A stretch of 64,000 nt of DNA from Eukaryota sp. TZLM1-RC (taxonomy: Eukaryota > Protista > Metamonada: BaSk clade). The translations under genes were made by a program, and so were the position numbers. Shown piece after piece: positions 187 through 62,300 of this stretch. Location of the stretch: positions 4,431,784-4,495,783 of the forward strand of contig JAUPSS010000004.1 of NCBI GenBank assembly GCA_040285825.1. Direction: 5' to 3'. The notes under the pieces were generated by a model. It was not told the origin of the DNA. It was given only the letters and a program-made list of their open reading frames with translations, and searched no databases. Position 1 is the first letter of the stretch. Each line of letters opens with the position of its first letter.

Positions 187-2079
187 ATGGCTGATACAAC
201 CATTAATGTCACATCTTCTAAAGATTCACCCTCTAAGACTACTCGTTCTGTGTCACTGATTCAGTTATGGAGACTCTATCCTCGTCACAAAGTTCTGCTA
301 TATCTCGGATCTATTCTCTGTTTTATTTCAGGTCTTGCTATGCCATTGTTTGCTCGTTTGTTTGGTGACATCTTCGAGGCGTTCACTCTTCCTTCTGACG
401 AAATTCGAGGTGAAGTTTTTGATCGTTGTATTCGCCTAGCCATCCTTGGTGTTGTTTTCTTCATCCTCAACTTTCCAGGTACAGCAATGCTTGGGTATCT
501 AGCCGAACATGTCCTCTACTCCATCAGAGTAAAGCTTTTTGGGTCTTTAATTGAAAAACCTAGTGCTTTTTTTGATAACCACCAATTGGGTACACTAGTA
601 AATAAGATTTCTGATGACTGTGCTATTGTACACAAGGGGGTTGGTGAAAAACCTGCCCAAGTTGTTTTTAATTTTGGTCAATTTTTGTTTGCCATGATTT
701 TGGCTTTTTACGAAAATTGGAGGGTCACTGGTGCCCTTCTTCTTCTCTCTCCTATACTCATCGTTACCGGGGCTATGGAGTCAAGAATGACTGAAATGGC
801 GGCCAAGAACCAATCAGATGTGAAGGGAAAGGCTTATTCCATCGTTCAGCAATCTTTAGATGGAATTACCACAGTCAAAAGTTACACTGCTAAGGAAGGA
901 ATGTTGAAAAAGTACCTCAAGGCTGCTGTTGTGCCTCTGAAACTAGGAATCAAAAAGTCCAAACTTGAAGGTTTCACTGTAGCCTCAATGTTTGGTTTAA
1001 TGATGCTTGTCTATGCAGGCTCTCTCTACATTAGTGGTGTTTTTATTGCCAATGGTACAGCCAGTGCTGGTGATGTTGCTGCTGTTTTCCTCTCGGTGAT
1101 GATGGGGATTATGGCCCTAGGAAACCTTGGTGGTTCATTAGGACCAATCGCAAAAGCAAAAGCAAGTGCAAGTAGTGTATACGAACTTATAGAAGCTCCA
1201 GCTGATGATCTCAACGAAAGCGGCATTATTAAAGAGTTGAAGGGTCATTTAAAGATTGAGAATGTCACTTTTAGGTACCCCACTAGGCAAGATGTGACTG
1301 TATTAAAGAACTTTTCTTTAGAAATTGAACCAAATACCACTGTAGCCTTTGTTGGAACCTCTGGAGGTGGTAAATCTACAAGTTTGTTGTAGTTAAATTT
1401 TAATCTTAGTTATTAATCTGTTGCAAAAGTTTTATGATCCAGAAGAAGGAAACGTTATTGTTGATGGAATTCCTTTGACTGATTTGAATCTAACTGCTTT
1501 TAGAAGGCAAGTTGCCCTTGTTGAGCAACATCCCAAGCTTTTTTCAGGAACTATTAAGGAGAATATTTTATTTGGCCTTTTCGGAACTGGTTTAGAATAT
1601 TCTCAGCCAGAATTGGAAAATAAAGTGATTGATGCTGCGAAAAAAGCCAATGCTTTTGATTTCATTACCTCCCTTCCCAATGGCTTTGATACTGAACTCA
1701 ATGAAGGGACCGAACTCAGTGGAGGCCAGTTACAAAGGATCTCCATTGCTAGAGCCTTGATTCGTGAACCAAAAGTTCTTTTACTTGATGAGTTTGTGTT
1801 TTGCTTTCTACTTATTCTAGACCAACTTCTGCTCTTGATTCCGAGTCTGAAAGGATGGTACAAGAAGTGTTGGAAGAAATGATGACTTCCCTGTCCTGTA
1901 CAATGATTATAATTGCTCATAGACTCTCCACTGTCAGAAATGCTGATAAGATTGCTGTCATTAATCGAGGGTTAATTGCAGAGGGTACCCATGAAGAGTT
2001 GTTAGCCAATTCGGAAGCATATCAAAAGTTAACTTCAAATCAACTTATTGGTTTTGCGAATAGCGAAGACTCTGAATAG
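187..2079 (+). CDS. ABCB (MDR/TAP-family) half transporter, TMD+NBD; join(187..1381,1410..1791,1821..2079)
   Basis: ABC_membrane-like hydrophobic N-half; Walker [11 protein letters not shown]-loop VEQHP, signature LSGGQ, H-loop IAHRLST. Removing two GT-AG mini-introns restores [15 protein letters not shown] and LLLDEPTSALD. Confidence 0.92.
1382..1409 (+). other. 28-nt spliceosomal intron (GTTTGT...TTAG)
   Basis: Contains an in-frame stop; removal rejoins Walker A to the NBD continuation in frame. Confidence 0.9.
1792..1820 (+). other. 29-nt spliceosomal intron (GTTTGT...CTAG)
   Basis: Removal restores Walker B/D-loop LDEPTSALD. Confidence 0.92.
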
Positions 2080-2384
2080 TTTTTTTTGGTTTCATTAAGT
2101 TTGTAATTATCTTTTTCTTAAATACAATCAGCAATGAAGAATTACTTTTCACTATTGAGTTGGAGTGGTCAAAAAGTTTTTAAATATTTATTGAACTACA
2201 ACACTTAGTAAAATTAAATCAGAACTAATGGGACGAAATTCATTGAACCATGATTTCCTCTACAAAATCATGATCTGCGTGCTTTCTCGCTATTGCTTCA
2301 GTTAATTGAAGAAAAAACCGAAGTAATCTATTAATAATCGCAAATTGAATTCATGATCCCCACAAAAGCACATCAAGATATGTG

Positions 2385-2810
2385 TGTAATGATTCTTTTA
2401 TACCAATGGCTCAATCAAAATATAGGGACCCCTAACGGTTTCCGAAAAAGCCAAAATTGACAAATATACAGCAAAATTGTTATCTTTGAATGCAGAATCA
2501 CATACTCATTATGTCCTCTGTCCATTTGCAGTTTCCCTTCATGGCACGCTTGGACCTCTTGCTTTATCTTTCTTGGATGATTTTGTTGAAATTGTGAAAC
2601 AACGTACTGGAAGAGTTTTTGGCAAAACTCTTTGGGTATTTTCAATTTTCAAAGGTGTTGTTCCCTTATTGTCTTCAGCTTTGTTGTCTCTTGGACGCTT
2701 TTATGAAAGAAAAACCTCCAGTCAATTCTTCTTGGCTGATTTGGGTTATGAAGATTTAGAATTTTGACCTTGTCGTATAGTTTGCTTATTTATTGAAATA
2801 AATATAAATA
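2385..2810 (+). mobile_element. 3' fragment of RLE-type (CRE-like) non-LTR retrotransposon, family A
   Basis: Near-identical to 38890-39330 and similar to 22750-23230 (YVLCPFAVSLHG..G...DLGYEDLEF*). Confidence 0.75.
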
Positions 2811-3167
2811 TATTAAAATTCCCTTAAAAATAGAAAATACAATTTTTTTGTTTTGCCAGTAAACACAATCGAAAATTCCTCCAGTCCTTTTTTACAACTA
2901 CATAGAAATTTTCAACGAGAGCCAAAGCAGCTTTACCTAAAGATCCCAGCTATCTTCAAGGGAATGGTGTCATTGATTTTTGTCATTGGTTTTCTTTTTT
3001 TGGTAAGTTTTCTGAATCTTTAGTACTTGACTGTTTTGATGTAGGGGATGCAGATTTTCAGGATGTGGGGCTTTAGTTGTGTATTTGGTGATCCTTGGTC
3101 AATAAATATGGAGAAAAAATAATTCAGTTACACTAACTAGACTACTTCACAATTGAAGCTTCAATAT

Positions 3168-4341
3168 CATATCTTGATGTGCTTTTGTGGGGATCATGAA
3201 TTCAATTTGCGATTATTAATAGATTACTTCGGTTTTTTCTTCAATTAACTGAAGCAATAGCGAGAAAGCACGCAGATCATGATTTTGTAGAGGAAATCAT
3301 GGTTCAATGAATTTCGTCCCATTAGTTCTGATTTAATTTTACTAAGTGTTGTAGTTCAATAAATATTTAAAAACTTTTTGACCACTCCAACTCAATAGTG
3401 AAAAGTAATTCTTCATTGCTGATTGTATTTAAGAAAAAGATAATTACAAACTTAATGAAACCAAAAAAAACTATTCAGAGTCTTCGCTATTCGCAAAACC
3501 AATAAGTTGATTTGAAGTTAACTTTTGATATGCTTCCGAATTGGCTAACAACTCTTCATGGGTACCCTCTGCAATTAACCCTCGATTAATGACAGCAATC
3601 TTATCAGCATTTCTGACAGTGGAGAGTCTATGAGCAATTATAATCATTGTACAGGACAGGGAAGTCATCATTTCTTCCAACACTTCTTGTACCATCCTTT
3701 CAGACTCGGAATCAAGAGCAGAAGTTGGTCTAGAATAAGTAGAAAGCAAAACACAAACTCATCAAGTAAAAAGAACTTTTGGTTCACGAATCAAGGCTCT
3801 AGCAATGGAGATCCTTTGTAACTGGCCTCCACTGAGTTCGGTCCCTTCATTGAGTTCAGTATCAAAGCCATTGGGAAGGGAGGTAATGAAATCAAAGCAT
3901 TGGCTTTTTCGCAGCATCAATCACTTTATTTTCCAATTCTGGCTGAGAATATTCTAAACCAGTTCCGAAAAGGCCAAATAAAATATTCTCCTTAATAGTT
4001 CCTGAAAAAAGCTTGGGATGTTGCTCAACAAGGGCAACTTGCCTTCTAAAAGCAGTTAGATTCAAATCAGTCAAAGGAATTCCATCAACAATAACGTTTC
4101 CTTCTTCTGGATCATAAAACTTTTGCAACAGATTAATAACTAAGATTAAAATTTAACTACAACAAACTTGTAGATTTACCACCTCCAGAGGTTCCAACAA
4201 AGGCTACAGTGGTATTTGGTTCAATTTCCAAAGAAAAGTTCTTTAATACAGTCACATCTTGCCTAGTGGGGTACCTAAAAGTGACATTCTCAATCTTTAA
4301 ATGACCCTTCAACTCTTTAATAATGCCGCTTTCGTTGAGAT
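3168..4341. repeat. Right arm of ~1.17 kb inverted repeat
   Basis: Reverse complement of 1208..2382 with a few homopolymer indels and rare substitutions; spacer of 785 bp. Confidence 0.93.
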
Positions 4342-17757: not shown

Positions 17758-19819
17758 GGGACAACACCAAAATCCACACGTACCACAATTTTTAATCAAA
17801 ATCCACAAACATTTCTCAAAGTAATTTTCACAATCCACATCATCCAGAACCTGTGATGAAAATCCACATATGACGTGACCCAAATCTTTTCAAGTTGGTT
17901 GATCAAAATCATCTTTATTGAACACCTCTATTCAACTGCTTCTTATGAAACAATAAACTATTGATTAGGACAACCTCTTTTGTTATGGTTTACTTCTCCA
18001 CATAAACCACACTTATAAATGCGTTTCTGAGCTGGCTCTAATGAAGTTTGAGATCTTCTGGGCTTACTTCCTGATTTTTTCTCTCTTGCATTCCTCATAC
18101 GAACTTTCTTGGGTCTGCCCACTCTCGGCTTGGCAATTGGAGGTCCGCTAACATTTACTTCCGGTGCTCTTTCATCAGATTCAACGTTACTCTCCAACGT
18201 AACATCATCAACAGATAATATTCTCCCTCGTAGGCACGTAAATACCATAAAGAAGAGTGCTGTGGTGCACAGTATTCAATTCCTCTTGAACCGTTCCTTG
18301 TCAAAAACATCAGCAAGTGAGCACATGGAATTCCTTCTTTCCCATCACAGCAACTACAACTCTTTTCCTCAATATCAACGTTGAACACTCTACCACTGTA
18401 TATGACCTCAAACTCATCGTCATCAACTTCAATAGATCTTAAGTCACGCAACAACATCAACCTCTCCTCAAGATTCTTAACAGCTCTTGGAACTAAAGGG
18501 AATTCAATCATTGCTCTTGCTTCTTTTCGTCTTGATACAAACCATCTTCCAAGCATTGCTCTGATACTATCAAACATTTGAACAATAGGTTGTTCTCTGG
18601 CTTCGTTGATAGCAGCATTGAGTGATTCCACGACGTTACTTGTGGTATGTCCCCACCTGTTTCCAGGAAAAATACACTCGACCCAATGTTGAGGATCTGC
18701 CGTCTTCTCGATATATTCCGCTGCCGTCTGTGAGACAATCGCCATTTCTTTTAGAATATCGTTGTAGTCATTGAGATTTTTTACTTTTGCTAGTCGAAAA
18801 ATAAAGGGCCTAGCTTTTTTTGATCCTTTACCTGTTGCATTATCAGCAAGATGTTTTACACAGAATGCATGAGGACATCCAGGAAGTACAGCCTCCACTG
18901 CATTGATCAGACCTTTTTGCCGATCAGAAATGATTGAAGTACATGAGATAACAAATATGTTGCGAAGATGATCTAGAACCCACGACCAAGTTGCTGTATT
19001 TTCAGTATCAACAACTCCAAACGCTAGAGGGAATGTCTGTCCATTTGCGTCAATTGTTGCAGCTGCCAAGATTGTTCCAAGATACTGATTTTTGATGAAA
19101 CAGCCGTCCAACTCGATCACAGGTTTACAATATTGCTGACCAGTAATGGATGCTGAAGACGCCAAAAAGCAACGACTAAAACGATCATCATCACCTGCTT
19201 CAACAAAAGCCACAGTTCCTGGCATTTTCTGTTTCAAACGTTCGAACTAACGAGGTAGTAGGCTGAAGGACTTCTCCTTGTCTCCATATAACAACATTTG
19301 TGCTTCTTTTACCACTCTAGAACATGCGTTATGATTGATTGGCATGTCAGACATCCTTTCCATTCTAGTTGGAGATACTGGTCCACAACGTCTGAAATCC
19401 TCTTTCAACATAAGAGCCACAATTTTCGCAGGAACGTGATTTTTTGATTGTGCTTGACAAGGTGTGTTGTGCTCCACGAACTTCGTAACAATCCAAACAT
19501 CGCAATCAAGAGACGTAGCAATAAAACGAAAGGGACACTTCTCATCATCACACTTGATTTCCCAGCGGGTCTTGTTGTTATTTTGAGCAGGAGAGAACTC
19601 TTTGTTGATTTCAATACCATATTGATGCAGAGTTGTTATCATTTTGTCACGAGATTCGAAAGTATCGTTCACTGAGATGGATATAGGTTCAGAAGCTTTA
19701 AGTTTATTAAGATTAAGAGCAATAGTCATTTTTGTGGTTTTTGATGAAAAAGATGGGACTAATGTTGCTGTGGATTTTGATGGAAATTGATTTAATCATG
19801 TGGATTTTGGTGTTTTCCC
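17758..19819 (-). mobile_element. Mutator-like (MULE/MuDR) DNA transposon, 2062 bp
   Basis: Imperfect ~50-bp TIRs starting GGGA(C/A)AACACCAAAATCCACA; perfect 9-bp TSD AATTCTGAT (17749-17757, 19820-19828). Confidence 0.93.
17958..19729 (-). pseudogene. MuDR transposase (one in-frame TAG at 19247, one frameshift near 18230)
   Basis: N-terminal C..C..H domain, IELDGCF, ISDRQKGL, HAFCVKHL, TSNVVESLN, SWIM (CSC...IPCAH), C-terminal CGLCGEVNHNKRGC. Confidence 0.9.
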
Positions 19820-27267: not shown

Positions 27268-28100
27268 TTAATTCATCTTCACTTTCTTAAAATTATTATT
27301 ATTTCTAACATCAATTACCAACAAATCAGTTTTATCAGGACTTGGACGTAAACCCCTCCCTAGTATTTGGTCATATAATATTTTCGAATAAGTAACTCGA
27401 TTGTAAATGATTAAATCAACCCTGGGGCAATCAAAAACAGTTGTCAAAACACCAACATTGGAAATAACCTGTATGTCACCATTCTCCAATTCTTTTAATA
27501 TTTCATCTCTATTTTTTGTTTTTCCATCAATGTGTTTGGATTTAATTCCGTGTTCAACCAACACATCATTAACATTTTTAGATTCATTAATAGTTTTTGA
27601 AAATATCAATACACATTTTCTATTTGTTTCTTTAATCATATCACCAAATTCCTCCACTTGTTTATCCATTTTTTTTACCTCATATGGCACTAGATATGAA
27701 TTATCAATCATCCATTCTCTTGTTTTGGAAAAAATTATTGGTAAATCCAAATGATATGGTGTTGCAGTGAATCCAATCACATTTGAATTTGATGAAACTC
27801 TCTTGATTATATTTTCAACTTGTTCAACTGCTTGGTGAACTTCATCTATAATAATCCAATTAAATTTACCGTGTTGTAATAGTTTATCAACACGATCTTT
27901 GGTTTTTGTGTGATGTAATGAACATCTTCCGGCAATGACAATTCTTTTATCATATTCTTCTTTTGATGCTTTAACTATGCCAATCTCATCTACTAAATCT
28001 TCATTAACCATTTTAATTTTATCAATTGTTTGTTGACACAATTCATCTGTGTAAATGATGATCAAAACACGTTCAGTTTTAGGAATTTGTGTTTCCAGGG
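27268..28100 (-). pseudogene. N-terminally truncated SF2 DExH helicase (Irc3/RadD/UvsW-like)
   Basis: RVLIIIYTDELCQQT (Ia), IIIDEVHQ (II), GFTATP (III), LIFS (IV), FDCPRVD (V), QILGRGLR (VI); Walker A not present. Confidence 0.8.
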
Positions 28101-29916
28101 ATATTAATGATAAATTAGAATTACATGATCAGATATTACAAAATACATTGAATATGAATAATGTCGATAATTATTCATTGGTCATTGATGAAAATACATT
28201 GGAAGCATTATATACTACATTTATACGTGTATTAGATAATTATTTACAACTTGATGATAATGGGAAGGAATATATATTAGATTATCATACTAAAACAGAT
28301 GATGAAAAAGCTGACATACTTGAAACATTTAGGGGTGGTAACATTGATGAAGATGCTTATAATAATTTGAGATTGGTTTTGAATGTTGATGGACTAAATG
28401 ACCTCATAGAACAATGTTTGTATATTTTATTAAATTGAGCATATTCAATAAACGCAATTCCCAATTCATTTACTTTAAATAATGTAAGATTTGATGATGA
28501 GTTTAAGAAAACAGTCAAAAAAATATTTAAACGGAGTGTTATTTATATTAATAATGCCACAATTTTATATAAACTCATCTCAAAATTTCGAATGGTCGGC
28601 TAATTACACCTTTTATATAGCGGAAGCATTTTTAGAAGGATATTATTCTGGAATAACAATGATAAGACATGGTGATTATATTTATGATCAATACCGAGCT
28701 AATCCTGATTATCAAGGTGTACCAGTATCAAGTGCTATGGTCCATGCAAGTCTATGGGTCACTCACTACGTAGTACCCATCAACATCTTCAAAGAACACC
28801 ATTTTTAAATGGTGCATCTAGAGAAATTAGAGAACTCACCACACCAGGATATTTGACATTTTATAGTAATGTATATCAACATTCCAATCCCACTAATATT
28901 GAAATTAATAGATTGGGAAAACATATTAAACAATCATTTGCACAAGTGGGATCAGACAACATTGGAATGGACTTACCAGGCAATTTTTACAATAGATTGA
29001 TTGCATTTGAATATGAGGGTTGTAATGAAGATTTTATTGCACATGTATCCGATGGTTTTGAATCTTCGGAAGGTGGGAGATTCCCATTACAACATGCATC
29101 TGAAAAAGAAAAATTACGCTCAAAATTTTTCAAATTGGTAGTCAATGAAGATGATTACAGAATAGATAGCATTCATAACCAAGATAAAATGCCACAAATT
29201 CATGAAACTCAAGAAATTAAAAATGTTTTAATTTTCAATTCTAGTGGATTTTTAATTACACTAATTGGAGATACATTACAACCAGTTCCCTTTAAATCAA
29301 CATCAAGTTGATTTAAGCAAGTCGTAGTAATAGACCAAGTGAGCCACATGGATTTGTGGAATATAGACAAGATTTTATGAGATATAGATTTATTGAAATA
29401 CATGGAGATGGTGTTCATTTACGATATGGTATTTCAAATTATTGTTTATTAAAGGGATTGGTACCGTTTGAAGATAGAATTGAAGTTAAACGTAATTTTT
29501 TCCTGAAAAATCGAAATGATATTGAAAACATCTTAACAATATTCGCAGGGAAAAGTCGTAACATCGTGTTATCAAGAGTACGAAAAACCTCTAATCAACA
29601 AATATTAACAAAAATTTTTAATGCATTAAATTTAATTGTTGGGTATAATTTATTAGAAATTTATAATGGAAGTAATGGAAGAATAGATATTGAAACCATT
29701 GTAGATATAATAAATGGACGCAATGTGGGCGCAATTGGTGAACTATTAGCTAACCAACAATTAGTAAACACATTAGATAAAACATCACAACCATTTATTG
29801 AAAATAGAACTGTAAATCGTATTCAATTAGAAATTCAAAATCATTTTGGCGACCGAGATAAAATTTTCACACACGTCTTACCTGATGTTGCAGAAGAGTT
29901 TAATTCCATTAAATGA
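28100..29916 (+). pseudogene. Chain of co-oriented hypothetical ORFs, probably one or two fragmented genes
   Basis: ORFs 28055-28438, 28491-28808, 28754-29311 and 29356-29916 abut or overlap; one shift falls at a T-run near 28805; no recognised motif. Confidence 0.4.
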
Positions 29917-30338
29917 GGTTCAACGCAACAACCAGATGGTTCGGTGTTAAAACTTTTATTAATCGATAATATTTTATTAAGTAACAATACCTATTCTGTT
30001 TTGCTGAGTGGCCGTACATCTTTACTCTGATCAAATGAGCACAACTGAATTTGTTGAACATTACAATATGAAAGTGAAATAGAGAACATTCTTTTATGAC
30101 ACACATACTACTTGAAATGAAAAAAATACGCAATAAGGTAGAATACAGTGTTGGTTTTTGATTATGAACCAAAAGAACCAGCTTTGAACAATAAAATGGG
30201 TTATGAATTACTACTTTAAATGTATCATATTACTGATGGGAACTAATCTCTGTAATACTTTGAAAAAGAACAAATAATATTGCATAATGAATGAATACAG
30301 CATAAGCGGATATCTCGAGGAGCTATTCTTTCTTGTTG

Positions 30339-31055
30339 ATGTTAAAGCTACTGTCCCTGTTTTGCATCTTTATTGCTGTATTGGGGTCATGTCCACCAAC
30401 AGAACGCGAAGCTCTGATAGCTATCTATGTGGCGTTAAAAGGGGGTGATTGGGCCAACACTTGGGACATTCATAACCCAGGAATAGACCACTGCAGCTGG
30501 TATGGAGTGGAGTGTTCTTCTGGAAGAGTAACAGCTATTATGCTCCAGGAAAACAACCTAAAGGGTGTCATACCATCTGTAATAGGCTGTTTTAACAGTC
30601 TTCAATATCTCAAGTTGCAAGGAAACATGCTGACGGGTTATATTCCATCCTCAATTGGCCATTTGCAAAAATTGAAGACGTTAGACCTCTCCGATAGTTT
30701 GATCACTGGACGTATTCCTACTACATTGTGTAATCTTTATGGTATGTTTTATGGATATTTAACAGCAGAAAGTCTACAATACTTGAACCTTCATAACACA
30801 AGACTTAATGGCAAGATACCTGAATGCTTTGATGTGAGATTCTCGTCTTCATTGGTATCATTTTCGGTACATTGTACAAGTCTTATTGGTACCATTCCAG
30901 ATGGTTTTGCAGATATGCGTTCATTGAGGTACCTCACATCCTATTGTACTTCAATGGGATGTGCCGGATGTACTCAGTTCAATGGACCTCATGGATGTCA
31001 AAAACAGTGTGGAAATGTCAATTGTGATAGTCAATGTCTAGCAAGTACTAGTTGA
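30339..31055 (+). CDS. Small secreted leucine-rich-repeat protein (LRRNT_2 cap + plant-specific-type LRRs, Cys-rich tail)
   Basis: Signal peptide, EREALIAIY...W...HCSWYGVEC cap, LxLxxNxLxGxIP repeats; probable in-frame mini-intron at 30742..30765/30768. Confidence 0.88.
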   Translation: MLKLLSLFCIFIAVLGSCPPTEREALIAIYVALKGGDWANTWDIHNPGIDHCSWYGVECSSGRVTAIMLQENNLKGVIPSVIGCFNSLQYLKLQGNMLTGYIPSSIGHLQKLKTLDLSDSLITGRIPTTLCNLYGMFYGYLTAESLQYLNLHNTRLNGKIPECFDVRFSSSLVSFSVHCTSLIGTIPDGFADMRSLRYLTSYCTSMGCAGCTQFNGPHGCQKQCGNVNCDSQCLASTS

Positions 31056-31059
31056 ATGT

Positions 31060-31230
31060 ATTGTAAATTTCTATCAAAACGCGCTTGATAGACGTTAAGC
31101 TTACTTTAGATCCATCACTATATGATATCACGATCAAATGGTAGTTAAAGCAGCAACATAACAATATGCGTACAGGTACGCAATACATGGAAAAACACTT
31201 ATCTACGGGGTCTCCGGAACGCCGCAGGTC
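31060..31230 (-). ncRNA. Candidate Fanzor omega-RNA scaffold
   Basis: Immediately 3' of the Fanzor ORF; stems 31167-31173/31176-31182 and 31070-31077/31085-31092; boundaries are inferred. Confidence 0.4.
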
Positions 31231-33111
31231 TTTCATTGTAGAAGTTCTCACTTATGGCAATCTCAAGCTGGTTTCTGGAGGCTGAGATGTCCCTCGACCA
31301 GAGTGTCTGACATTGAGGGCAGACAAACTTAACATTGTTTACCCTCCCATCATCGTGATACACCTTTTGATTGAATACCTTACAGCAATTCGTTTTGGCA
31401 GATGTGTAGAATTGATCTCCATTAGGCTTCACATATGTAAAATGTTTCCGAATCTTCTTCAAAAAGCGCTTCCTTGGGGTTTTCACAGCTTGTCTTAATG
31501 GCCCATCACCTCCACAACCAAACCAAATTTTGGTTTCTCTTCCATTAGCCATTAGATTAATTTTTTCAATTAATCCCATTATCCTTTTTTAACTTCTTAT
31601 AAAGAAATCAAACTTGTTGCGGCGCAGGGCTCGGCGATCTCCATTCATCAGCAGTTGGTCTAGTATAGTTCTCGGACGGAAGTCGGGATTACTGATTTCT
31701 TCCTGTGTCGGTACCCACATCAACGGCATTGCTATTTCATTAAGATATTTGTGTAAATTCTTAGCGAAATAGCAATTTGGTGATGCATGGGTCAGGACCG
31801 GGAGGTGAATGATCTTCCTTGCCTTTGGATTCAGAACAAGGGCCGAAAGTTGATGATCAACATTGTTATTATCAAATCTTGATCCAATTGAATAGCCACA
31901 CAAATTTTTGTGGTTAGGATCAATTACACAAAATGAATATTCAATTGGATCAACTGGAGGAGGCTCATAGGCGTCGTCAGTTCTTCGACGTTGCCTTGGA
32001 CGGACCTGTTGTTGAAGTCTAGAGTTTTGCTTTCGACTCTTTGCAGGCATATTGAGTTTCCCACTGGCTATGGTGGTTGCCAATTCTCTGTCTGTCCGGC
32101 GATTCTTATTTTTTTAGGGGCAAAGGAAAAAGTGAAGCGGATTGAAACAGCATCTGAACTGATTGTGTAAGTCAGATACTTCTTTTTTCTGAAAAGGGCA
32201 AACGGATCTTTCAGCAGACAGTGGTTGGCATTAAAAGAGAGAAAATGCTTTTCCAGTTTTTGACTAAAAGAGATAAAGCCAGGAGAATAACTGGGGGATG
32301 TGCAAACAACATTTCTTCGCATGGTGTCAGATGCAATATTTTCCAGAAAGGATACAATATTTAGCCTAGTAGTGAATAAGAAGGTGATGTTGTCTAGATT
32401 GAAATCAACATTCTCCAGCATCAACATAGCGTCAAAACGATGAGGGTCGGCAACCTGCTGAGTAAATAAATCCATTATGTACTCATGGTGACCTTCATCA
32501 TACCATGCGCGCAAAGACTCAGAAATAGTGGCTGCAGTCGTGTTCACCACTAATGAAGCATATTTTTTTGGGCAAGGGCACTCAAAGAAGGTAGCCTTTG
32601 TCCGGAAGAAGTTCAGCTTCCAGGAGACAGGGCCATCAGTAAGTATTTGACAAAAGCTGTTCGCCATTTGCAGTACGTGAAAGCTTCTAATGTCAGAGTG
32701 GTACCAGTTGTTGGTTCCCTTCTGAAAGCCAATAGGAGGAAACGGCCAGCCAGGTCGGAAAGAGACATCATAGAGTGCGCGGTACACTTCCATATGGTTC
32801 TCGAATGGGCGTCTCACAGTCGGATGAGGTACCATTACAAAGTCTTCGCATTTATACACAAACTCTTGTTGATATAACCAGAAAGCCATTTCCGGATATT
32901 GCAGAACGAACAGCTGTGCTAACCGGGCAGTAAGCACAGTGACAGTTCGAATATAGCGAAACTGTCTTTCCATTGAAACAAGAGCTGCAGTAGAGAAGAA
33001 CTGAGCAGCACTTGCTGGAACTGTCGGCTTGCTGTCGTTTATTGGTTGCTCACGACGGTTAACCTCCCAGGGGAGTACACGCCCTCGACGTGGCAACTCT
33101 GGATTTGCCAT
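31199..33111 (-). CDS. Fanzor1-like (eukaryotic TnpB) RNA-guided nuclease, ~637 aa; split by a 1-nt A-run indel (32109-32115) and an in-frame TAA (31589-31591)
   Basis: ISSDAVSIRFTF (TDGVS-like), RuvC-I VIDPN, WFGCG, DQFYTS (DExxTS), NCC...CPQC zinc finger, RuvC-III WSRDISASRN, terminal ERPAAFRR. Confidence 0.82.
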
Positions 33112-35149
33112 AGGGAATGTCAGTCGAGAAAGGATCAGACTGTCAACAATAAAAATTTCATTTATTCACAACTTCTTGCATCTATAAAAATACAAAACAT
33201 GAGCAAAATGTTGTAAAATGTTGTAGGAGTTGTTGTAGGTGATAACATTAGCATATCCAACCAAGAAAACGTGTTGTTTCAATGAGTTGGTATAAAGTTT
33301 TATTTTCATAATGTGATCAACTTGACACTTCTTTAATCTTTAAATAGAAACCACTCAACCTAACAACTTCTCTCTTACACGAACTTTATCTTCTACGATG
33401 TAAAGACTTGGGTGAGTCTTCTTCCACTCAACATTTTGATGATTTTCAGAAATCGTTTCCTTCCATAACCTCACTAGAAATTCAGCGATTATGCCTTTGG
33501 TCCCTATTCAGCTGACACCTTTAGAGTTTGAATAGATTACGATAGAAAATTAGAATATTGTCTTTTCAATATCTGTTTTTTCATATTCAAACTTGCTGTC
33601 TTATCATCTTCGGCTTCGTTTATTAACTCCACACCTTCTACTTGTGCAGAACTTTTGATATTACACTTTGATAAGAGAATGGCATTTCTCCAATCCATAT
33701 TGCATTCCATCGCTTGCCGTGGTTGCTAAAGTCACAGCGATGTTCGTTATACATTATTGATTACAGTTGCATGCAGCTTTCTTTCACATATATGGTGGAC
33801 TTAATCTATTCACACATCAAGGACCATTCTCTTTTGTCTTCTCATTTCGTCAGTCATTGATGTGGTCATGGGGGAACTGTCCAAAAGGGCTGATTTGACA
33901 CCAAAACTACTAGTTGTTTTCGATACTCTCTTTTTCGGATTGAATCACACTCTAAATACCATTCTATTATATAGTCAATCTCTGCAGTCCTTGGAAGATT
34001 CCTCGCATATAGCCTTGAACTAACAAAACAAGTCCCTCTCTTTCAACACTTATTGGGGAATTCCTTGGGGTTTTGTCTGATCTGAATTACTCAAATACCA
34101 TTTATTAATAATGGTGATCCTAATTAATTCGACTCCATATCAAGCAGAATACAGGGCTCCATGTCCATTATAATTGCTCCTCTCAGCTGGTTTTTTTCCA
34201 ACACCACCGCCATTGTTCTTTTTTTAAAAAAGATAATAATTTTTTAAAACAATTATAAAGAGGAATGTCAGACTTGGATATCTAGGTGTTCTGAGAATCG
34301 TGTTGCAAGCTTGGACAGTCGAATTAAGCACGACGTGTCTTCTTTTGAGTTGAATTGGTCCCTGATAAACCACCACCAAAGTACAATCTTGTTGACTGAG
34401 TCCAAGACTGAGAAGGCGTATATATATAAGGTACAATTGCTAATACAATGGTAAAGAATGTAGATTTTAGGATTTCTTCTGATAAAAAAGGATTGACAGA
34501 TTTATATTGTAACTAATACTCACCACATAACTAATAGTTCCAAAATGAAACAGTATCGCTTCATCTTTTATTATAGTGTTCGTGCAAGTGTTGGTAAAAA
34601 GGATAGTGTTGGTGAAAGAAGTGGTGTGTTGAAAAAGGATTTTATAATTATGTGGACAAAAGGAAAACCACAATTGATTTTAGATTTAAAATATATAAAA
34701 TCTTTCATCTGAAAGTAGGTGAGTGTCTTGAAATTAATGGATTTGAATAGTTAATAATATACCTAATCAATTAACTTTGATACCCAATTTCCAAGATCTA
34801 TCACTATTTTCGACATTCAATTCCGTTCATTATGAATCTTACAAAATTAAGAATAGATGAGTATTTTGATTTGGAAACATTAATCATATAGAGATATTGG
34901 AAATTAGATTCTTTTATGATGATGACTATTGTGATTTTGTTCAAAAATTAATAAAAATAAAAAAAATTTAAAAGTGAAACGAAAAAGCATAATAATCAGC
35001 ATTCAAAGTTTTAGAATTATCATACAAAGAAAATTTACTAATGTTGATTGAACCTTTGAACGATTAATAAAGAAATAAGAATGATTTTTGCACAAAATGA
35101 AGTTTCCTATACTGATTTTTTGTATTGTGTTTTTAATTATAAGTTTTGT

Positions 35150-47550: not shown

Positions 47551-47591
47551 CAAGTCAGGATTCCTGACTGTTATCCCATCTTCGCCCCATT

Positions 47592-50500
47592 ATGAACAAA
47601 CTCCTTATTTACCTTCTGCTTTTGGTGTCGTTTTCTGTTCAAGAAAATCTTCCTGAGACTATTGATTCATGTTTCACATTCGAAGATTATCCGCAATACA
47701 ACGTCCCTACAGATCAACACACCACGATCATTTTCGATTCACAGTGTCCATCACTGGTTCTACCTGAAGGTGTCACTTTATTAACGTCTGGCACTTTGCT
47801 CATCCAAAACCTTCAATTCAATGTTGAAGGTACCCTTTTCAATTCTGGTACTGTTGAACTTTCTTCATCTAATCTGACAACGTCTTCAGCTAGTGGCAAT
47901 GTGTTCTCAACCAATCATTTTCATGTTGATTTCAATTCTATTATCGATGTGAGTTTGGGTAAGGTGACCCTCAGCAATGATGATATCGAGGGACATATCT
48001 TAGTCTCTGGAGGTGAACTTTATCTAGAAAGTGAAATGGTGCTAAATCACACAATAACCATGACATCAGGTACTATTAATCTAAATGGAGGTCATATTAC
48101 TAGTGAGGAACAACCTACATTTGACCTTTTTTGTGAGGAGGGGTGCTTACTGGATATATCTGGTCAAGCCAGGGTTCCATCAGTGAGTTCTTCAGGAGCA
48201 CACATCAAGACCTCAAGTTATCCTGTCATTTCCAAATTTTTTTTGGCTGATTCCTCCACATTGATGTTGGAAAGTGGTAGGCTAACCATTGAAGATCAAC
48301 TTGAGGTCAATGATGCCTTTGTCACTTCCTTGTTCAGTGATGGAGAAATCGTTGTTGTCGAGGGGTCCTTCCAAGCTCAAGCAAGAATAAGTGATGTAGC
48401 TATTGCTGTTTATGGGACACTTGCTATTTCAAACGTGGTTACAATTTTCAATTCTACCATCTATGTAAGTCAATCTAGTGGTTTGTTTGTTTATGTTGAG
48501 GATTGTATAACTGAATTACTCCATGAAACAGTATTTATCAATAACGAGGGTTCGTTCACCATTGTCAGTGATTGTGAAGTTTTTGGTGGAAGTTTTGACT
48601 TGGTATCAGTTGGAGATTTCAGTATTATTAATTATGAAATAGATTCTTTTATTGGCACTTTCCTTCTTTCTACGAATTACCTAGTCGTGACGCAAGAAGC
48701 AGTTTCAGAGCACAATATTGTACTGTCTTCTGGAATTGTATACTTCGACGACTTGTATTTTGATCTCGCAGAATCAAGTTTAATTATTGATGGCTCTGCT
48801 TTGTTTTTACAAGGTGACTCTTTTATTGAGTATGTTGAATTGCTTTCTGGTAACATTACTGTCGAAGGTAACCGTGTCTCACTATTTGTATTAGAATTAG
48901 TCGGAAATGGAACTCTTTTTTTTAATGATTGCGAAGGATTTAACATTTTTGAAGATTCAGTTTTCCAATCTGGCGAGCTTATTTCAAACACTTTGACTGA
49001 GATTACTGTGTTTTCAGGTTTTGTTTTTAATCCATTAGATGCTACTTCTCTTTCTTTTACCAATATTTCACTTGACCTTCAAAATGTAGAATTGGTGATC
49101 CCTTTGTGCATGTCCATGGATAATTTGGTTTTTTCCATAGCAAGCAACTCAATCGTCAATATTACTGCTACTGATCTTTGTGGAGATCCTTTACTGGAAC
49201 AAGGAGGAACCATTCTTAATAGAGGAGTGGTTAACGTGTTGACAAGTTTAATCATTGAAGGTTCCTTTCTTAACCATGGAGATTTGATCATTCCAGCTAA
49301 CGTAGAATTTATTATTAAATCTGAATTTGTTTCAGTGAATTTTCAAGATTTTGATTTTATGGGGGTTTATTCCCGAGGTTCAATAATTGTAAATGATGAT
49401 ACCAGTAGAGTCTTTTTGGGAGGGGAACTAGAGCTTCTTGGTGAATTGATTAATAATGGTGAGGTTGTCTTTAAAGACGCAACTTTTATCACCAATTTTA
49501 CTGTTCCTGAAGGGGTCTACGTCTTTGAAAATTCTATTGATATTGAAGCTTGGTTGAGAATTTCCAACTTTGGACACTATTCTTTTTCCAAGGCAACAGT
49601 TCATTCTGAATATGATCATTATTTGGAAGTCGACTGTTCTGATTGCTTGGTTAAAGTTACAAAGTCTACAATTAATGATTTAGCATTGAAAAATGGTCAA
49701 GTTGAGATTGATTCTACAGACAATACTATTTCTTCCTTCACCTTAGATGATGGCCAGGTCACCCTAACTGAAGATTCTGTTTTAACAGTTGAAACATTAA
49801 CCTGGACTGCTGGTACTGTTCAAGGTGTTTCTAGTGCCAAACTGATTCTTTCTGATAATGGTTCAATTGCTGGTGATGCTGTTATGAATGACTTGACTAT
49901 TGAAATGTCTTCCAAGATTAATTTATCTCCTTGTCTCACTGCCCATACCTCCATTTTAAATGTTCAAGAAACAGGTGAATTGGAAGTTGCGTCAACTGAA
50001 TCCTGTTCTCATTTGCTTGATTTAACAATCAATAATAATGGTAAAGTCATATTTTCCACCAATGTTGATTCAAGTTCACAAAAAAGCTCCATCCAACTCC
50101 ATCACCTCATCAATAAAGGTTCATTTACCATTACTGATAACAGTGTAGTCACTATAACGGATTACGTTTACAGCAATCAGGGAATTTTCAACCAAGGTCT
50201 TTTGGTTTTGGGTGGCCACGGCTTGGTTGAACATAGTTGCTTGGGCAATTTTGTTAATTATGGCGAGTACTTGTTCAATGATGTCCTTTGTTTAAACAGC
50301 TCAGTACAGAATGATGGTGAGCTCACTGTAACCAATTCATCCACTTTGCTCTCAAACTGGGTCAATAAGGGTACTTTCACTATTGGTGAAGATACTATTT
50401 TGGTCATCTCTGGACCTTTTGAATCTACAGCGTCTTCTGTTATCCAAAATTATGGTGATTTTTCTATTGAGTCTGGCGATGTTTTTCTGTCGGGTCAATT

Positions 50501-51389
50501 GTATTCAAATTTCCCGATTACAACTATTAATTCTAATGTTGTTTTTAATGATTTAAATGCTCCTGTCACTGAAGTGTTTAACTCTCTCCCTTTTCCATCA
50601 TTTTTGGAGAATGGAGCTTCTTCTTTAAGAATTTCAAACTCTGAACTCAAAGAGCTTCATTTGTTCTCTGGTAATTTGGTACTAGGTGATGAGGATTCTA
50701 TTATTGATTTACTTTTATTTTATTCAACTCATATTATTCAACTAGATTCTGTTGTTACTTCCCTCAACTATACCGCCACGACAGATACTATTCTGAAAGG
50801 GGATGGTTTCATTTCAACCCCCCATGGCAATTTTTTCAAAGGCAAAACCGAATGCAAATGGGGCTTCTTTGGTTTTGATTGCCTTGGTACTTGTTCAGAC
50901 TTCATTAATTGTGATGAATGTACCACCAATGAGGCTTGTGGGTGGATTCTCGAGGATAAGAGTTCTATCGATGATGGCGAATGTGTGGTGGTAATAGATG
51001 ATCAACCAAAGGTTGATTTCAATTATCTTTTAATTGAAACTTGTTCTTTTGATCCTCTTGATAATGAAGGTGGTTCAATGTTGCTGCTTATTATCATTGG
51101 AATTCTTTTATTAGGATCTGTTGTAGTTTTCGTTGTTTTAAAGAAATTAAGAACAAAACCTTTGGATCTTGATTTCACCATCGAGTTAGACCGTATTATC
51201 CACAAACCAACTCTAAGTTCCTATACAGAACCAACTGTGTCAGAAGTGGATGAATGGGTCATTGAATCAGAATTGATGAAGGATTTCGACTTTGATGTTT
51301 ATCAGATGGAACTTGACCATCAGGATGAAGATGATTCTGATGAAGCAGTTCATTATTCTGATGATGATTTTGTTGTTTCCCTCAATTGA
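47592..51389 (+). CDS. Type-I membrane surface protein (beta-helix-like ectodomain, EGF-like + PSI-like module, TM, acidic tail), 1265 aa
   Basis: Signal peptide, beta-rich N/G repeats, CKWGFFGFDC, CDECTTNEACGW, TM LLLIIIGILLLGSVVVFVVL. Confidence 0.85.
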   Translation: MNKLLIYLLLLVSFSVQENLPETIDSCFTFEDYPQYNVPTDQHTTIIFDSQCPSLVLPEGVTLLTSGTLLIQNLQFNVEGTLFNSGTVELSSSNLTTSSASGNVFSTNHFHVDFNSIIDVSLGKVTLSNDDIEGHILVSGGELYLESEMVLNHTITMTSGTINLNGGHITSEEQPTFDLFCEEGCLLDISGQARVPSVSSSGAHIKTSSYPVISKFFLADSSTLMLESGRLTIEDQLEVNDAFVTSLFSDGEIVVVEGSFQAQARISDVAIAVYGTLAISNVVTIFNSTIYVSQSSGLFVYVEDCITELLHETVFINNEGSFTIVSDCEVFGGSFDLVSVGDFSIINYEIDSFIGTFLLSTNYLVVTQEAVSEHNIVLSSGIVYFDDLYFDLAESSLIIDGSALFLQGDSFIEYVELLSGNITVEGNRVSLFVLELVGNGTLFFNDCEGFNIFEDSVFQSGELISNTLTEITVFSGFVFNPLDATSLSFTNISLDLQNVELVIPLCMSMDNLVFSIASNSIVNITATDLCGDPLLEQGGTILNRGVVNVLTSLIIEGSFLNHGDLIIPANVEFIIKSEFVSVNFQDFDFMGVYSRGSIIVNDDTSRVFLGGELELLGELINNGEVVFKDATFITNFTVPEGVYVFENSIDIEAWLRISNFGHYSFSKATVHSEYDHYLEVDCSDCLVKVTKSTINDLALKNGQVEIDSTDNTISSFTLDDGQVTLTEDSVLTVETLTWTAGTVQGVSSAKLILSDNGSIAGDAVMNDLTIEMSSKINLSPCLTAHTSILNVQETGELEVASTESCSHLLDLTINNNGKVIFSTNVDSSSQKSSIQLHHLINKGSFTITDNSVVTITDYVYSNQGIFNQGLLVLGGHGLVEHSCLGNFVNYGEYLFNDVLCLNSSVQNDGELTVTNSSTLLSNWVNKGTFTIGEDTILVISGPFESTASSVIQNYGDFSIESGDVFLSGQLYSNFPITTINSNVVFNDLNAPVTEVFNSLPFPSFLENGASSLRISNSELKELHLFSGNLVLGDEDSIIDLLLFYSTHIIQLDSVVTSLNYTATTDTILKGDGFISTPHGNFFKGKTECKWGFFGFDCLGTCSDFINCDECTTNEACGWILEDKSSIDDGECVVVIDDQPKVDFNYLLIETCSFDPLDNEGGSMLLLIIIGILLLGSVVVFVVLKKLRTKPLDLDFTIELDRIIHKPTLSSYTEPTVSEVDEWVIESELMKDFDFDVYQMELDHQDEDDSDEAVHYSDDDFVVSLN

Positions 51390-56352: not shown

Positions 56353-59300
56353 TTAATCAACAGAAAGAGAAGTTTCTTCTTTTGTATCTTCTTCCCCAGA
56401 GGTGTGCTCTGTGTCATGAAGTTCTTTTTCTGAAGAACTTAATTTTTCTCGATCCGACACTACACGATCCTCAACATCATCTATAATAACCTCAATAGCA
56501 GACTTTTTGTCTTCTTCCTGATCAGAAACAATGGAATCACCTGACACATGGATTTCTATTTCGTGCTCACTAGCAACTGGGTGAATGGAAACATCGTTGA
56601 GTTCAACAGGATCAATAGTCCGCAAATGGACTCTTGGAATATATTTGGACTCTTCCTTGCCAAAGAGCCGCATAGTGAAATAAAGCGCTAAAGAAATTAA
56701 AATAATAGTGATTAAAATTCCAGCTAATGGGTAATTCGTAGTTTCTTCATTATCAAGAGGATCAAAAGAACAAGTTTCAATTAAAAGGTAGTTGTAATCA
56801 ACCTTTGGTTCACCATCTATTACCACCACACATTCGCCATCATCGATAGAACTCTTATCCTCGAGAATCCACCCACAAGCCTCATTGGTGGTACATTCAT
56901 CACAATTAATGAAGTCTGAACAAGTACCAAGGCAATCAAAACCAAAGAAGCCCCATTTGCATTCGGTTTTGTCTTTAGAATGATCTCCTCTTGGAGTTGA
57001 AATTACTCCCTCACCTTCAATTGATGATCCAGGAGCAGGAATAAATGTATCTACCGAGACTGCTACATCAACAACAATTGGAGAAGAAGTTGAGCTAATG
57101 AGGGTATTAATTGTAGAAGGATCATTCACAAATCTAACGTTGCCTTCCATAATGCGTAAGGTTTCCACATAAACACCCCTGAACTGAGTGTATTCAGTTT
57201 CAACAGAAGTAAAAGCAGGTCCAAATTCCTTATAATTGATATCTACAGCGTGAATTGAAGTGTTGCCGAAAACCACATTTCCACCTGTGATTTCAATTGT
57301 TTCTTGACTAAATAGATCTCCATAAATGTCAGTTCTTCCAGAATTTATTTTCAGAACGCATTCAAGGCTCCAGGCTTGAGGAACTTGGAAAACACCATAA
57401 TTGATAAATTCAGTTAAGTTGAAATGGGTACCAACATTGACTTTACCATTATTATTGATTGTTAAATCAAGCAAATGAGAACAGGATTCAGATGATGAAA
57501 CTTCCAATTCACCAGTTTCTTGAACATTTAAAATGGAGGTATGGGCAGTGAGACAAGGAGATAAATTAATCTTGGAAGACATTTCAATAGTCAAGTCATT
57601 CATAACAGCATCACCAGCAATTGAACCATTATCAAAAATAATAAGTTTGGCACTAGAAACACCTTGAATGGTACCAGCAGTCCAGGTTAATGCTTCAACT
57701 GTTAAAATAGAATCTTCAGTGAAGGTGACCTTGCCATCATCTAAGGCGAAGGAAGAAATAGTATTGTCTGTAGAATCAATCTCAGCTTGACCATTTTTCA
57801 ATGCTAAATCATTAATTGTAGACTTTGTAACTTTGACCAAGCAATCAGAACAGTCGACTTTGAAAGAACCATCAGCATCAGTTGCAACAGTAGCATGATA
57901 CACCTCTACATTACCATTGGAAGAAATTGTAATACCTTGATGGTTGATATGTTCAGTAAAAACAAAAGAACCTGTTTCTAAAACTAAATCTTCACCAATA
58001 GAAAGGTCTTCAAAAGTTAAAATACCAGTGGTTTTAATTGTTCCATTAGCTTCCAAATTTGCGGTAATTCTACTACTGTCAGAACTGGTTTCTAATGTAC
58101 CTAGAACATTCAAAGTATCTGTTGATTCAAGATTAGCGACTTCCAAGTAACCAGCCTCTGAAACAGTGAATGTGTTACCATTGGCTACATCAGCTACGTT
58201 GAAATGGGTATCAACATTGACTTTACCATTATTATTGATTGTTAAATCAAGCAAATGAGAACAGGATTCACTTGATGGAACTTCCAATTCACCTGTTTCT
58301 TGAACATTTAAAATGGAGGTATGGGCAGTGAGACAAGGAGATAAATTAATCTTGGAAGAAATTTCAATAGTCAAGTCATTCATAACAGCATCACCAGCAA
58401 TTGAACCATTATTAGAAAGAACAAGTTTGCCACTAGAACCACCTTCAATAGTACCAGCAGTCCAGGTTAATGTTTCAACTGTTAAGATAGAATCTTCAGT
58501 TAGGGTGACCTTGCCATCATCTAAGGTGAGAGAAGAAATAGTATTGTCTGTAGAATCAATCTCAACTTGACCATTTTCTAAGAACAAGCTATTAATTGTA
58601 GACTTTGTAACTTTAACTAAGCAATCAGAACAGTCGACTTTGAGAGGACTAGTAGCATCAGTGGCAACAGTAGCATGATACACCTCCACATTACCATTGG
58701 AAGAAATTGTAATGCCATGATGGTTGATATGTTCAGTAAAAACAAAAGAACCTGTTTCTAAAACTAAAGTTTCATCAATTGAAAGGTCTTCAAAAGTTAA
58801 AATACCAGTGGTTTTAATTGTTCCACTAGCTTCCAAATTTGCGGTAATTCTACTACTGTCAGAACTGGTTTCTAATGTACCTAGAACATTCAAAGTATCT
58901 GTTGATTCAAGATTAGCGACTTCCAAGTAGCCATTCTTCGAAACAGTGAATGTGTTAGCATTAGCTACATCAGCTACGTTGAAATGGGTATCAACATTGA
59001 CTTTACCATTATTATTGATTGTTAAATCAAGAAAATGAGAACAGGATTCAGTTGATGGAACTTCCAATTCACCTGTTTCTTGAACATTTAAAATGGAGGT
59101 ATGGGCAGTGAGACAAGGAGATAAATTAATCTTGGCAGACAATTCAATGGTCAAGTCATTCATAACAGCATCACCAGCAATTGAACCATTATTAGAAAGA
59201 ACAAGTTTGGCACTAGAAACACCTTGAACAGTACCAGCAGTCCAGGTTAATGTTTCAACTGTTAAAACAGAATCTTCAGTTAGGGTGACTTTGCCATCAT

Positions 59301-62300
59301 CTAAGGTGAATGAAGAAATAGTATTGTCTGTAGAATCAATCTCAACTTGACCATTTTCTAAGAACAAGCTATTGATTGAAGACTTTGTAACTTTAACCAA
59401 GCAATCAGAACAGTCGACTTTGAGAGGACTAGTAGCTTCAGTAACAAGAGTAGCATGATACACCTCCACATTACCATTGGAAGAAATTGTAATACCTTGA
59501 TGGTTGATATGTTCAGTAAAAACAAAAGAGCCTGCCCCTAAAACTAAATCTTCACCAATAGAAAGGTCTTCAAAACTTAAAATACCAGTGGTTTTAATTG
59601 TTCCATTAGCTTCCAAATTTGCGGTAATTCTACTACTGTCAGAACTTGTTTCTATTGTACCTAGAACATTCAAAGTATCTGTTGATTCAAGATTAGCGAC
59701 TTCCAAGTAGCCATTCTCTGAAACAGTGAATGTGTTACCATTGGCTACATCAGCTACGTTGAAATGGGTATCAACATTGACTTTACCATTATTATTGATT
59801 GTTAAATCAAGCAAATGAGAACAGGATTCACTTGATGGAACTTCCAATTCACCTGTTTCTTGAACATTTAAAATGGAGGTATGGGCAGTGAGACAAGGAG
59901 ATAAATTAATCTTGGCAGACAATTCAATGGTCAAGTCATTCATTACAGCATCACCAGCAATTGAACTATTATTAGAAAGAACAAGTTTGGCACTAGAAAC
60001 ACCTTGAACAGTACCAGCAGTCCAGGTTAATGTTTCAACTGTTAAAACAGAATCTTCAGTTAGGGTGACTTTGCCATCATCTAAGGTGAATGAAGAAATA
60101 GTATTGTTTGTAGAATCAATCTCAACTTGACCATTTTCTAAGAACAAGCTATTGATTGAAGACTTTGTAACTTTAACTAAGCAATCAGAACAGTCGACTT
60201 TGAGAGGACTAGTAGCGTCAGTGACAACAGTAGCATGATACACCTCCACATTACCATTGGAAGAAATTGTAATACCTTGATGGTTGATATGTTCAGTAAA
60301 AACAAAAGAGCCTGTTTCTAAAACTAAAGCTTCACCAATAGAAAGGTCTTCAAAAGTTAAAATACCAGTGGTTTTAATTGTTCCATTAGCTTCCAAATGT
60401 GCGGTAATTCTACTACTGTCAGAACTGGTTTCTAATGTACCTAGAACATTCAAAGTATCTGTTGATTCAAGATTAGCGACTTCCAAGTAGCCATTCTCTG
60501 AAACAGTGAATGTGTTACCATTGGCTACATCAGTTACGTTGAAATGGGTATCAACATTGACTTTACCATTATTATTGATTGTTAAATCAAGCAAATGAGA
60601 ACAGGATTCACTTGCTGGAACTTCCAATTCACCTGTTTCTTGAGCATTTAAAATGGAGGTATGGGCAGTGAGACAAGGAGATAAATTAATCTTGGCAGAC
60701 AATTCAATAGTCAAGTCATTCATAACAGCATCACCAGCAATTGAACCATTATTAGAAAGAACAAGTTTGGCACTAGAACCACCTTGAATAGTACCAGCAG
60801 TCCAGGTTAATGTTTCAACTGCTAAGATAGAATCTTCAGTTAGGGTGACCTTGCCATCATCTAAGGTGAGAGAAGAAATAGTATTGTCTGTAGAATCAAT
60901 CTCAACCTGACCATTTTTCAATGCTAAATCATTAATTGTAGACTTTGTAACTTTGACCAAGCAATCAGAACAGTCGACTTTGAAAGAACCATCAGTATCA
61001 GTTGCAACAGTAGCATGATACACCTCCACATTACCATTGGAAGAAATTGTAATACCTTGATGGTTGATATGATCAGTAAAAACAAAAGAACCTGTTTCTA
61101 AAACTAAATCTTCACCAATAGAAAGGTCTTCAAAAGTTAAAATACCAGTGGTTTTAATTGTTCCATTAGCTTCCATATTTGCGGTAATTCTACTACTGTC
61201 AGAACTAGTTTCTAATGTACCTAGAACATTCAAAGTATCTGTTGATTCAAGATTAGCGATTTCCAAGTAGCCATTCTCTGAAACAGTGAATGTGTTACCA
61301 TTGGCTACATCCGTTACGTTGAAATGGGTATCAACATTGACTTTACCATTATTATTGATTGTTAAATCAAGCAAATGAGAACAGGATTCACTTGATGGAA
61401 CTTCCAATTCACCTGTTTCTTGAACATTTAAAATGGAGGTATGGGCAGTGAGACAAGGAGATAAATTAATCTTGGCAGACAATTCAATGGTCAAGTCATT
61501 CATTACAGCATCACCAGCAATTGAACTATTATCAGAAAGAACAAGTTTGGCACTAGAAACACCTTGAATAGTACCAGCATTCCAGGTTAATGTTTCAACT
61601 GTTAAAATAGAATCTTCAGTGAAGGTGACCTTGCCATCATCTAAGGCGAAGGAAGAAATAGTATTGTCTGTAGAATCAATCTCAGCTTGACCATTTTTCA
61701 ATGCTAAATCATTAATTGTAGACTTTGTAACTTTGACCAAGCAATCAGAACAGTCGACTTTGAAAGAACCATCAGCATCAGTTGCAACAGTAGCATGATA
61801 CACCTCCACATTACCATTGGAAGAAATTGTAATGCCATGATGGTTGATATGTTCAGTAAAAACAAAAGAACCTGTTTCTAAAACTAAATCTTCACCAATA
61901 GAAAGGTCTTCAAAAGTTAAAATACCAGTGGTTTTAATTGTTCCATTAGCTTCCATATTTGCGGTAATTCTACTACTGTCAGAACTAGTTTCTAATGTAC
62001 CTAGAACATTCAAAGTATCTGTTGATTCAAGATTAGTGACTTCCAAGTAGCCATTCTCTGAAACAGTGAATGTGTTAGCATTAGCTACATCAGCTACGTT
62101 GAAATGGGTATCAACATTGACTTTACCATTATTATTGATTGTTAAATCAAGCAAATGAGAACAGGATTCACTTGATGGAACTTCCAATTTACCTGTTTCG
62201 TGAACATTTAAAATGGAGGTATGGGCAGTGAGACAAGGAGATAAATTAATCTTGGCAGACAATTCAATGGTCAAGTCATTCATAACAGCATCACCAGCAA

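Follow-up and report, generated by a model that had tools for sequence, protein, structure and literature searches.

A pseudogene copy of a multicopy Fanzor1 gene in the genome of the soda-lake protist Skoliomonas

The locus described here is a pseudogene copy of a multicopy gene for Fanzor1, an RNA-guided DNA-cutting enzyme, in the genome of Skoliomonas isolate TZLM1-RC (which we take to be S. litria), a free-living anaerobic metamonad protist from soda lakes. It lies within a stretch of 64,000 nucleotides of genomic DNA, referred to below as the window, where the gene is present as three minus-strand pieces extending from 33111 to 31199, and we are confident that it represents a dead copy of a mobile element that is multicopy and non-autonomous and carries a Fanzor1 gene. 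A preliminary description had drawn attention to a Gln at the position of the RuvC-II catalytic Glu and had suggested that, were this a family trait, the protein could be a non-cutting RNA-guided regulator. A naturally occurring Fanzor regulator devoid of nuclease activity would have been important, but sister copies rule that out, and the window copy, being a pseudogene, is unimportant in itself. What is useful is the family to which it belongs, a metamonad Fanzor1 lineage of soda-lake protists which is far removed in sequence from the solved Fanzors.

The broken gene and its sister copies

The three consecutive open reading frames had been proposed to join into a single protein of about 637 aa, and their coordinates proved right: the joined pieces align over their full length, with 89–91% identity, to the uninterrupted natural 637-aa sisters P0026 and P0029. 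The 5' piece (32116–33111, minus strand, codons 1–332) encodes the WED/REC part and carries SDA at the position of the TDG motif; the annotated 347-aa ORF P0023 (32068–33111) extends past it and its last residues are out of frame. A frameshift follows at a run of seven A residues (32109–32115). The middle piece (31592–32108) carries RuvC-I, with the motif IDPN and an intact Asp at 31919–21, and is closed by a premature TAA (31589–31591). The 3' piece (31199–31588) encodes WFGCG (earlier given as FGxG), RuvC-II (GDQFYTS) with CAA for Gln at the catalytic position (31412–31414), a Cys finger (CC...CxxC), RuvC-III (SRD, with Asp at 31289–91) and RPxxF, followed by the stop codon. All of these positions, and the order of the motifs, were confirmed as first described. 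Against Pfam, the last piece matches the TnpB/Cas12f TNB domain beyond the cut-off (E 3.3e-6), so that the resemblance is not due to chance. The pieces were queried separately and the fold was taken from the natural intact sister P0029.

Beyond the stop codon lies a conserved non-coding right end (31060–31198, minus strand), a putative omega-RNA scaffold, which is 139 nt long here and about 167 nt long in the sisters. It is bounded by TA (31059–31060), a possible target dinucleotide, and the right flank that follows (31043–31058) would be the guide. On the other side of the gene, the rest of the 5' non-coding part of the element extends over 33112–33410, with about 58 nt lost near 33215; homology to the sisters ends at 33410 and the far left end of the family is missing from the window. 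No transposase gene was recognised beside the window copy, in agreement with the preliminary description, or in the element at the fetched loci. Nor did the region 33410–34500, where a lost partner gene was sought, yield similarity to any fetched locus or a convincing Pfam match.

Twelve copies were compared, the window copy and 11 sisters read as DNA, out of at least 28 close copies; the sisters were fetched by protein and the sample is therefore biased to copies that keep the gene start. The premature TAA and the Gln codon, which might have been common to the copies, are both private to the window copy, all 11 sisters having CAA at the first position and GAA at the second. The A7 run is only partly private: the same slip occurs in two sisters (L006 and L008), while the other nine have A8, and it may represent a recurrent homopolymer slippage hotspot or an assembly error. 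Uninterrupted frames are present in L001 and L002 (637 aa) and in L003 (632 aa). Among 62 retrieved family proteins spanning the RuvC-II motif, from three Skoliomonas genomes, the residue is Glu in 61 and Lys in one, and it is never Gln.

The RuvC triad of the window copy is D-Q-D, broken by the frameshift and the stop, and there is no single open D-E-D frame. Since the Glu codon is retained in the sisters, the Gln reflects ordinary decay rather than the emergence of a new non-cutting regulator and, lying downstream of both the frameshift and the stop, it would not be translated in a full-length protein. It is one of about 80 substitutions accumulated since insertion, and the window copy does not make the full-length protein. 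This copy differs from the majority sequence by 80 substitutions, more than any of the 11 sisters (20–65), and its pN/pS of 0.65 falls among those of the other broken copies L005, L007 and L008 (0.58–0.67) as against 0.22–0.53 for the intact ones, values which are based on 16–73 changes per copy. The right end is also damaged, by a 28-nt deletion at about 31087–31083 that is found only in the window copy and removes most of the last hairpin; the folding z-score is -0.89 here compared with -2.16 in an intact copy.

In some diplomonads TAA is a codon for Gln. Such a reassignment was considered for this genome and rejected, because TAA terminates 13 of 21 host genes and occurs inside none of them; it is a genuine stop codon here.

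It could be argued that the locus encodes a nuclease-dead Fanzor which has been retained as an RNA-guided DNA binder or repressor, the eukaryotic counterpart of the bacterial TldRs. The exchange of Glu for Gln is a conservative one at a catalytic residue, both Asp residues are retained, and TldRs are known in bacteria (10.1101/2023.11.30.569447). However, the Gln is private to the window copy and is preceded by a frameshift and a genuine stop, the putative omega-RNA is damaged, and the divergence looks near-neutral, and we consider the probability of this explanation to be negligible. RuvC inactivation is not fixed across the clade, and the window copy lacks an intact frame under purifying selection. 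At the level of the family the proposal is refuted, as judged from the sequences of the D-E-D sisters.

The assembly was generated from Nanopore (R9.4) reads polished with Illumina reads, and single lesions, above all that in the A7 run, could be assembly errors. The gene would then be less broken than it appears, with at least one lesion arising as a consensus error in a repeat poorly polished by short reads. The use of R9.4 reads and the recurrence of the A7 slip, in three of the 12 copies, fit with this, homopolymer slips being typical of Nanopore error, but the stop and the Glu-to-Gln change each involve a base substitution, homopolymer error does not explain the deletions of 28 and ~58 nt, the divergence of about 5% should allow short reads to be placed uniquely, and the same assembly holds other copies that are intact. 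We regard it as very unlikely, and decay of the window copy, a caveat already raised in the preliminary description, is borne out by the frameshift, the stop, the exchanged residue and the right-end deletion.

Several other features of the window were observed. An AT-rich cluster (28–29% GC) of short intronless ORFs at 27268–29916 includes a DEAD/ResIII-type helicase fragment and is possibly viral or Polinton-like. Large ORFs resembling surface proteins, at 56356–63999 (minus strand) and 47568–51386 (plus strand), contain 780-nt (260-aa) tandem repeats in nine copies with about 94% identity. Perfect inverted repeats of 604, 437 and 128 nt, 100% complementary, surround a retroelement relic at 1208–4341 and are either a recent inverted duplication or an assembly artefact. 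ORF pieces at 18158–19795 (minus strand), located 11 kb from the Fanzor gene, show by eye the signature of a Mutator-like (MULE) transposase.

A Fanzor1 lineage of Skoliomonas

When the first piece was used as a query, every protein matched came from Eukaryota sp. TZLM1-RC or GEM-RC1, both of which are Skoliomonas isolates, and the piece belongs to a cluster of 28 members which includes P0023. Further subfamilies, at 38–52% identity, form clusters of 18 and 17 in TZLM1-RC, of 41, 14 and 10 in TZLM3-RCL, and of 8 and 3 in GEM-RC1. In searches with intact sister proteins against 1.84 billion representatives, the strong full-length matches that were looked up derive from Skoliomonas; the best of the remaining, outlying matches stands at 2.6e-14, and the motifs of these outliers are those typical of Fanzor1. 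Viral and JGI metagenome contigs yielded no relatives. The family is a Fanzor1 lineage restricted to Skoliomonas and, given that a literature search found no paper treating Skoliomonas together with TnpB, and none among those listed treating it together with Fanzor, it seems to be undescribed. Fanzor1 elements that lack a transposase were already known (PMC10432273).

The assignment to Fanzor1, proposed initially from the motifs, was examined with a model of the intact sister P0029 (pLDDT 64). In a Foldseek search the Fanzors of Parasitella, Spizellomyces and Guillardia occupied ranks 1–7 (E 1.3e-8 to 4e-5), while VIA gave Fanzor1 Z scores of 15.9–19.3 over 433–476 residues, compared with 10.6 for the next fold, at an rmsd of about 10. 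The overall predicted fold matches that of Fanzor1, with expanded REC and WED domains. The triad of the intact family (D398, E567 and D608 in P0029) is split round the Zn finger, and 90% or more of the 30 proteins in the alignment retain it. RuvC-I carries DPN, a variant of the DPG that serves as the Fanzor fingerprint (PMC10711439), and SpuFz1, from Spizellomyces punctatus, likewise has Asn two residues past the RuvC-I Asp (PMC10432273). E567, within GDEFYTS, occurs nine residues before the first Cys and corresponds to the alternative Glu that closely precedes the Zn finger, the distance between the two being about six residues in Fanzors and about 50 in canonical TnpB (PMC10711439). The SDA at the TDG-motif position in this subfamily is replaced by SDG or SNG in related ones. 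Taking the modelled fold and these motifs together, we consider the Fanzor1 assignment sound for the family.

This genome is densely populated with Fanzors, which lie in local clusters. More distant copies were seen within a few kb of many copies (at L001, L002, L005 and L006, by tblastn of P0138, with a 362-aa TNB gene in L005). A 1323-aa protein annotated in TZLM3-RCL, P0262, combines XPG/FEN1-type nuclease domains with a Fanzor TNB domain and is either a fusion or a merger of gene models.

In the family, natural intact copies are available (P0026, P0029 and P0028), the right end has been mapped, and a T-rich/TA sequence is a candidate for the target motif. A cleavage assay would accordingly be easy to set up, and the family provides a system for addressing the question of what role Fanzor1 plays for its element in eukaryotes.

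Ends, insertion sites and spread of the element

The 12 copies are dispersed, 94–98% identical, and have unrelated flanks and a common right end. The right boundary lies about 167 nt past the stop codon in all 12, ending in GAAATTCACAG, and TA follows in nine. The right end is predicted to form three stems closed by a terminal stem, with 0 compensatory pairs, and this predicted fold would resemble the three-stem shape with a terminal stem described for Fanzor1 RNAs; a search of Rfam with the right end gave no match. Two further loci are of interest here. In a second subfamily the end is formed by a similar motif, GAAATTCTCAGA (L004:11867-11990 and L009:11866-11982), with the following gene starting 6 nt later in L004 and about 25 nt later in L009. 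A short piece at L004:5259-5319 is 80% like the putative omega-RNA, has no recognised Fanzor gene adjoining it, and is possibly a ghost locus or relic.

The right end is located 10–81 nt ahead of an annotated start codon on the same strand in 7 of the 12 copies, a placement which applies to 4.7% of intergenic positions (binomial p 3e-7). The tendency of right ends to occur at gene starts holds and is not base-precise. The window copy is an exception. It adjoins the stop codon of an LRR ORF that runs towards it (30333–31055, plus strand), and the sequence that would serve as its guide is antisense to the end of this ORF, from the final codons through the stop, automatically so, given that the guide is simply the right flank.

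The left limits, by contrast with the common right end, differ in nearly every copy, falling at -1149, -823, -803, -748, -722, -660, -640, -620, -548, -410 and -243 on the scale of L007. The first of these is shared by L007 and L008, the latter with an internal deletion, and -410 is that of the window copy (33410). L007 and L008 begin directly after a T-run ending in TA and their start mirrors the right end at only 7 of 10 positions; two copies cannot prove that this is the true left end. A left end at -792 was rejected, since L001 and L007 share sequence beyond that point and the 8-nt asymmetric inverted repeat found there is not terminal. Matches to asymmetric inverted repeats are limited to 8–9 nt and do not occur at the terminus of the longest copy, no target duplications exceeding 5 nt were found, and comparison of guides with the flanks of other copies gave short chance matches only. 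At L007:8680-9000 (plus strand), and in common with L001, L002, L005 and L011, there are decayed remains of the tail of another Fanzor, with CxxC followed by WNRD (Pfam TNB E 0.12); the element of the longer copies looks like a Fanzor gene set behind an older one, after which both moved together.

By analogy with SpuFz1 and TnpB, intact copies would produce the Fanzor protein and an omega-RNA with the right flank as guide, and would cleave their own insertion site in its unoccupied form, where repair could restore or spread the element. New insertions would presumably be made by a separate enzyme supplied in trans. Copying may begin at the right end and stop early, as proposed for the Chlamydomonas Helitron2-associated Fanzor1 elements CRe-1, 2 and 3 (PMC3627910), a mechanism to which we would give a little short of even chances. 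The CRe elements, too, are often truncated at the 5' side or deleted internally while keeping their 3' ends intact (PMC3627910), and the two longest family copies likewise start just past a T-run. In contrast to the CRe elements, the family lacks 7–19-bp target duplications and convincing asymmetric inverted repeats, no Helitron partner was found for it, and its gene is intronless. The main alternative, a TA-targeting cut-and-paste element that uses a transposase in trans and whose left ends were lost later, is credible, if on balance doubtful.

Spread by retroposition has also to be weighed, with a CRE-like non-LTR reverse transcriptase copying the Fanzor RNA from its 3' end to yield 5'-truncated copies. 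The fixed 3' end and variable 5' ends would be accounted for, and many relics of non-LTR retroelements are present in the window, but the copies have neither a tail nor flanking sequence brought along from a donor, and target duplications longer than 5 nt are lacking; with tails and duplications missing, retroposition appears improbable. It bears only on the movement of the element and not on the deadness of the window copy.

A broader proposal is that the Skoliomonas Fanzor1 elements spread without a dedicated pair of transposase ends, by a copying process that starts from the right end and is directed into the promoter or 5'-leader DNA of host genes, with the Fanzor itself aiding insertion. 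This is speculative and, in our view, rather unlikely; if true, it would constitute a novel mode of mobility among elements with an RNA-guided nuclease, and the window copy would be a dead by-product situated away from a gene start.

Relation to SpuFz1 and TldRs

The best structural match to the family is SpuFz1 (PDB 8gkh and 9cez), with a Z score of 19.3 and 465 residues aligned. The two are alike in size and in the spacing of their key residues, with D383, N385, E541 and D606 in SpuFz1 (PMC10432273) corresponding to D398, N400, E567 and D608 in P0029, and in each case the element carries no internal transposase. The stand-alone state remarked on in the preliminary description is therefore not unusual, as SpuFz1 elements also lack a transposase (PMC10432273). 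The suggestion that the lineage is a divergent one is upheld: identity to SpuFz1 is only 11–13%, and the family profile gave no sequence-level match to any PDB chain. The elements differ further in that those of SpuFz1 have 30-nt inverted repeats whereas the family shows terminal symmetry of at most 4 nt, with the left end mostly missing, and the family has a Cys finger of the form CC...CxxC. Moreover, the window copy, unlike SpuFz1, is dead.

The likeness to TldRs is confined to the window copy and consists in the loss of one RuvC catalytic residue. TldRs are intact genes with a RuvC that is inactive throughout the clade (10.1101/2023.11.30.569447), whereas the change in the window is private to one broken copy of a multicopy element.
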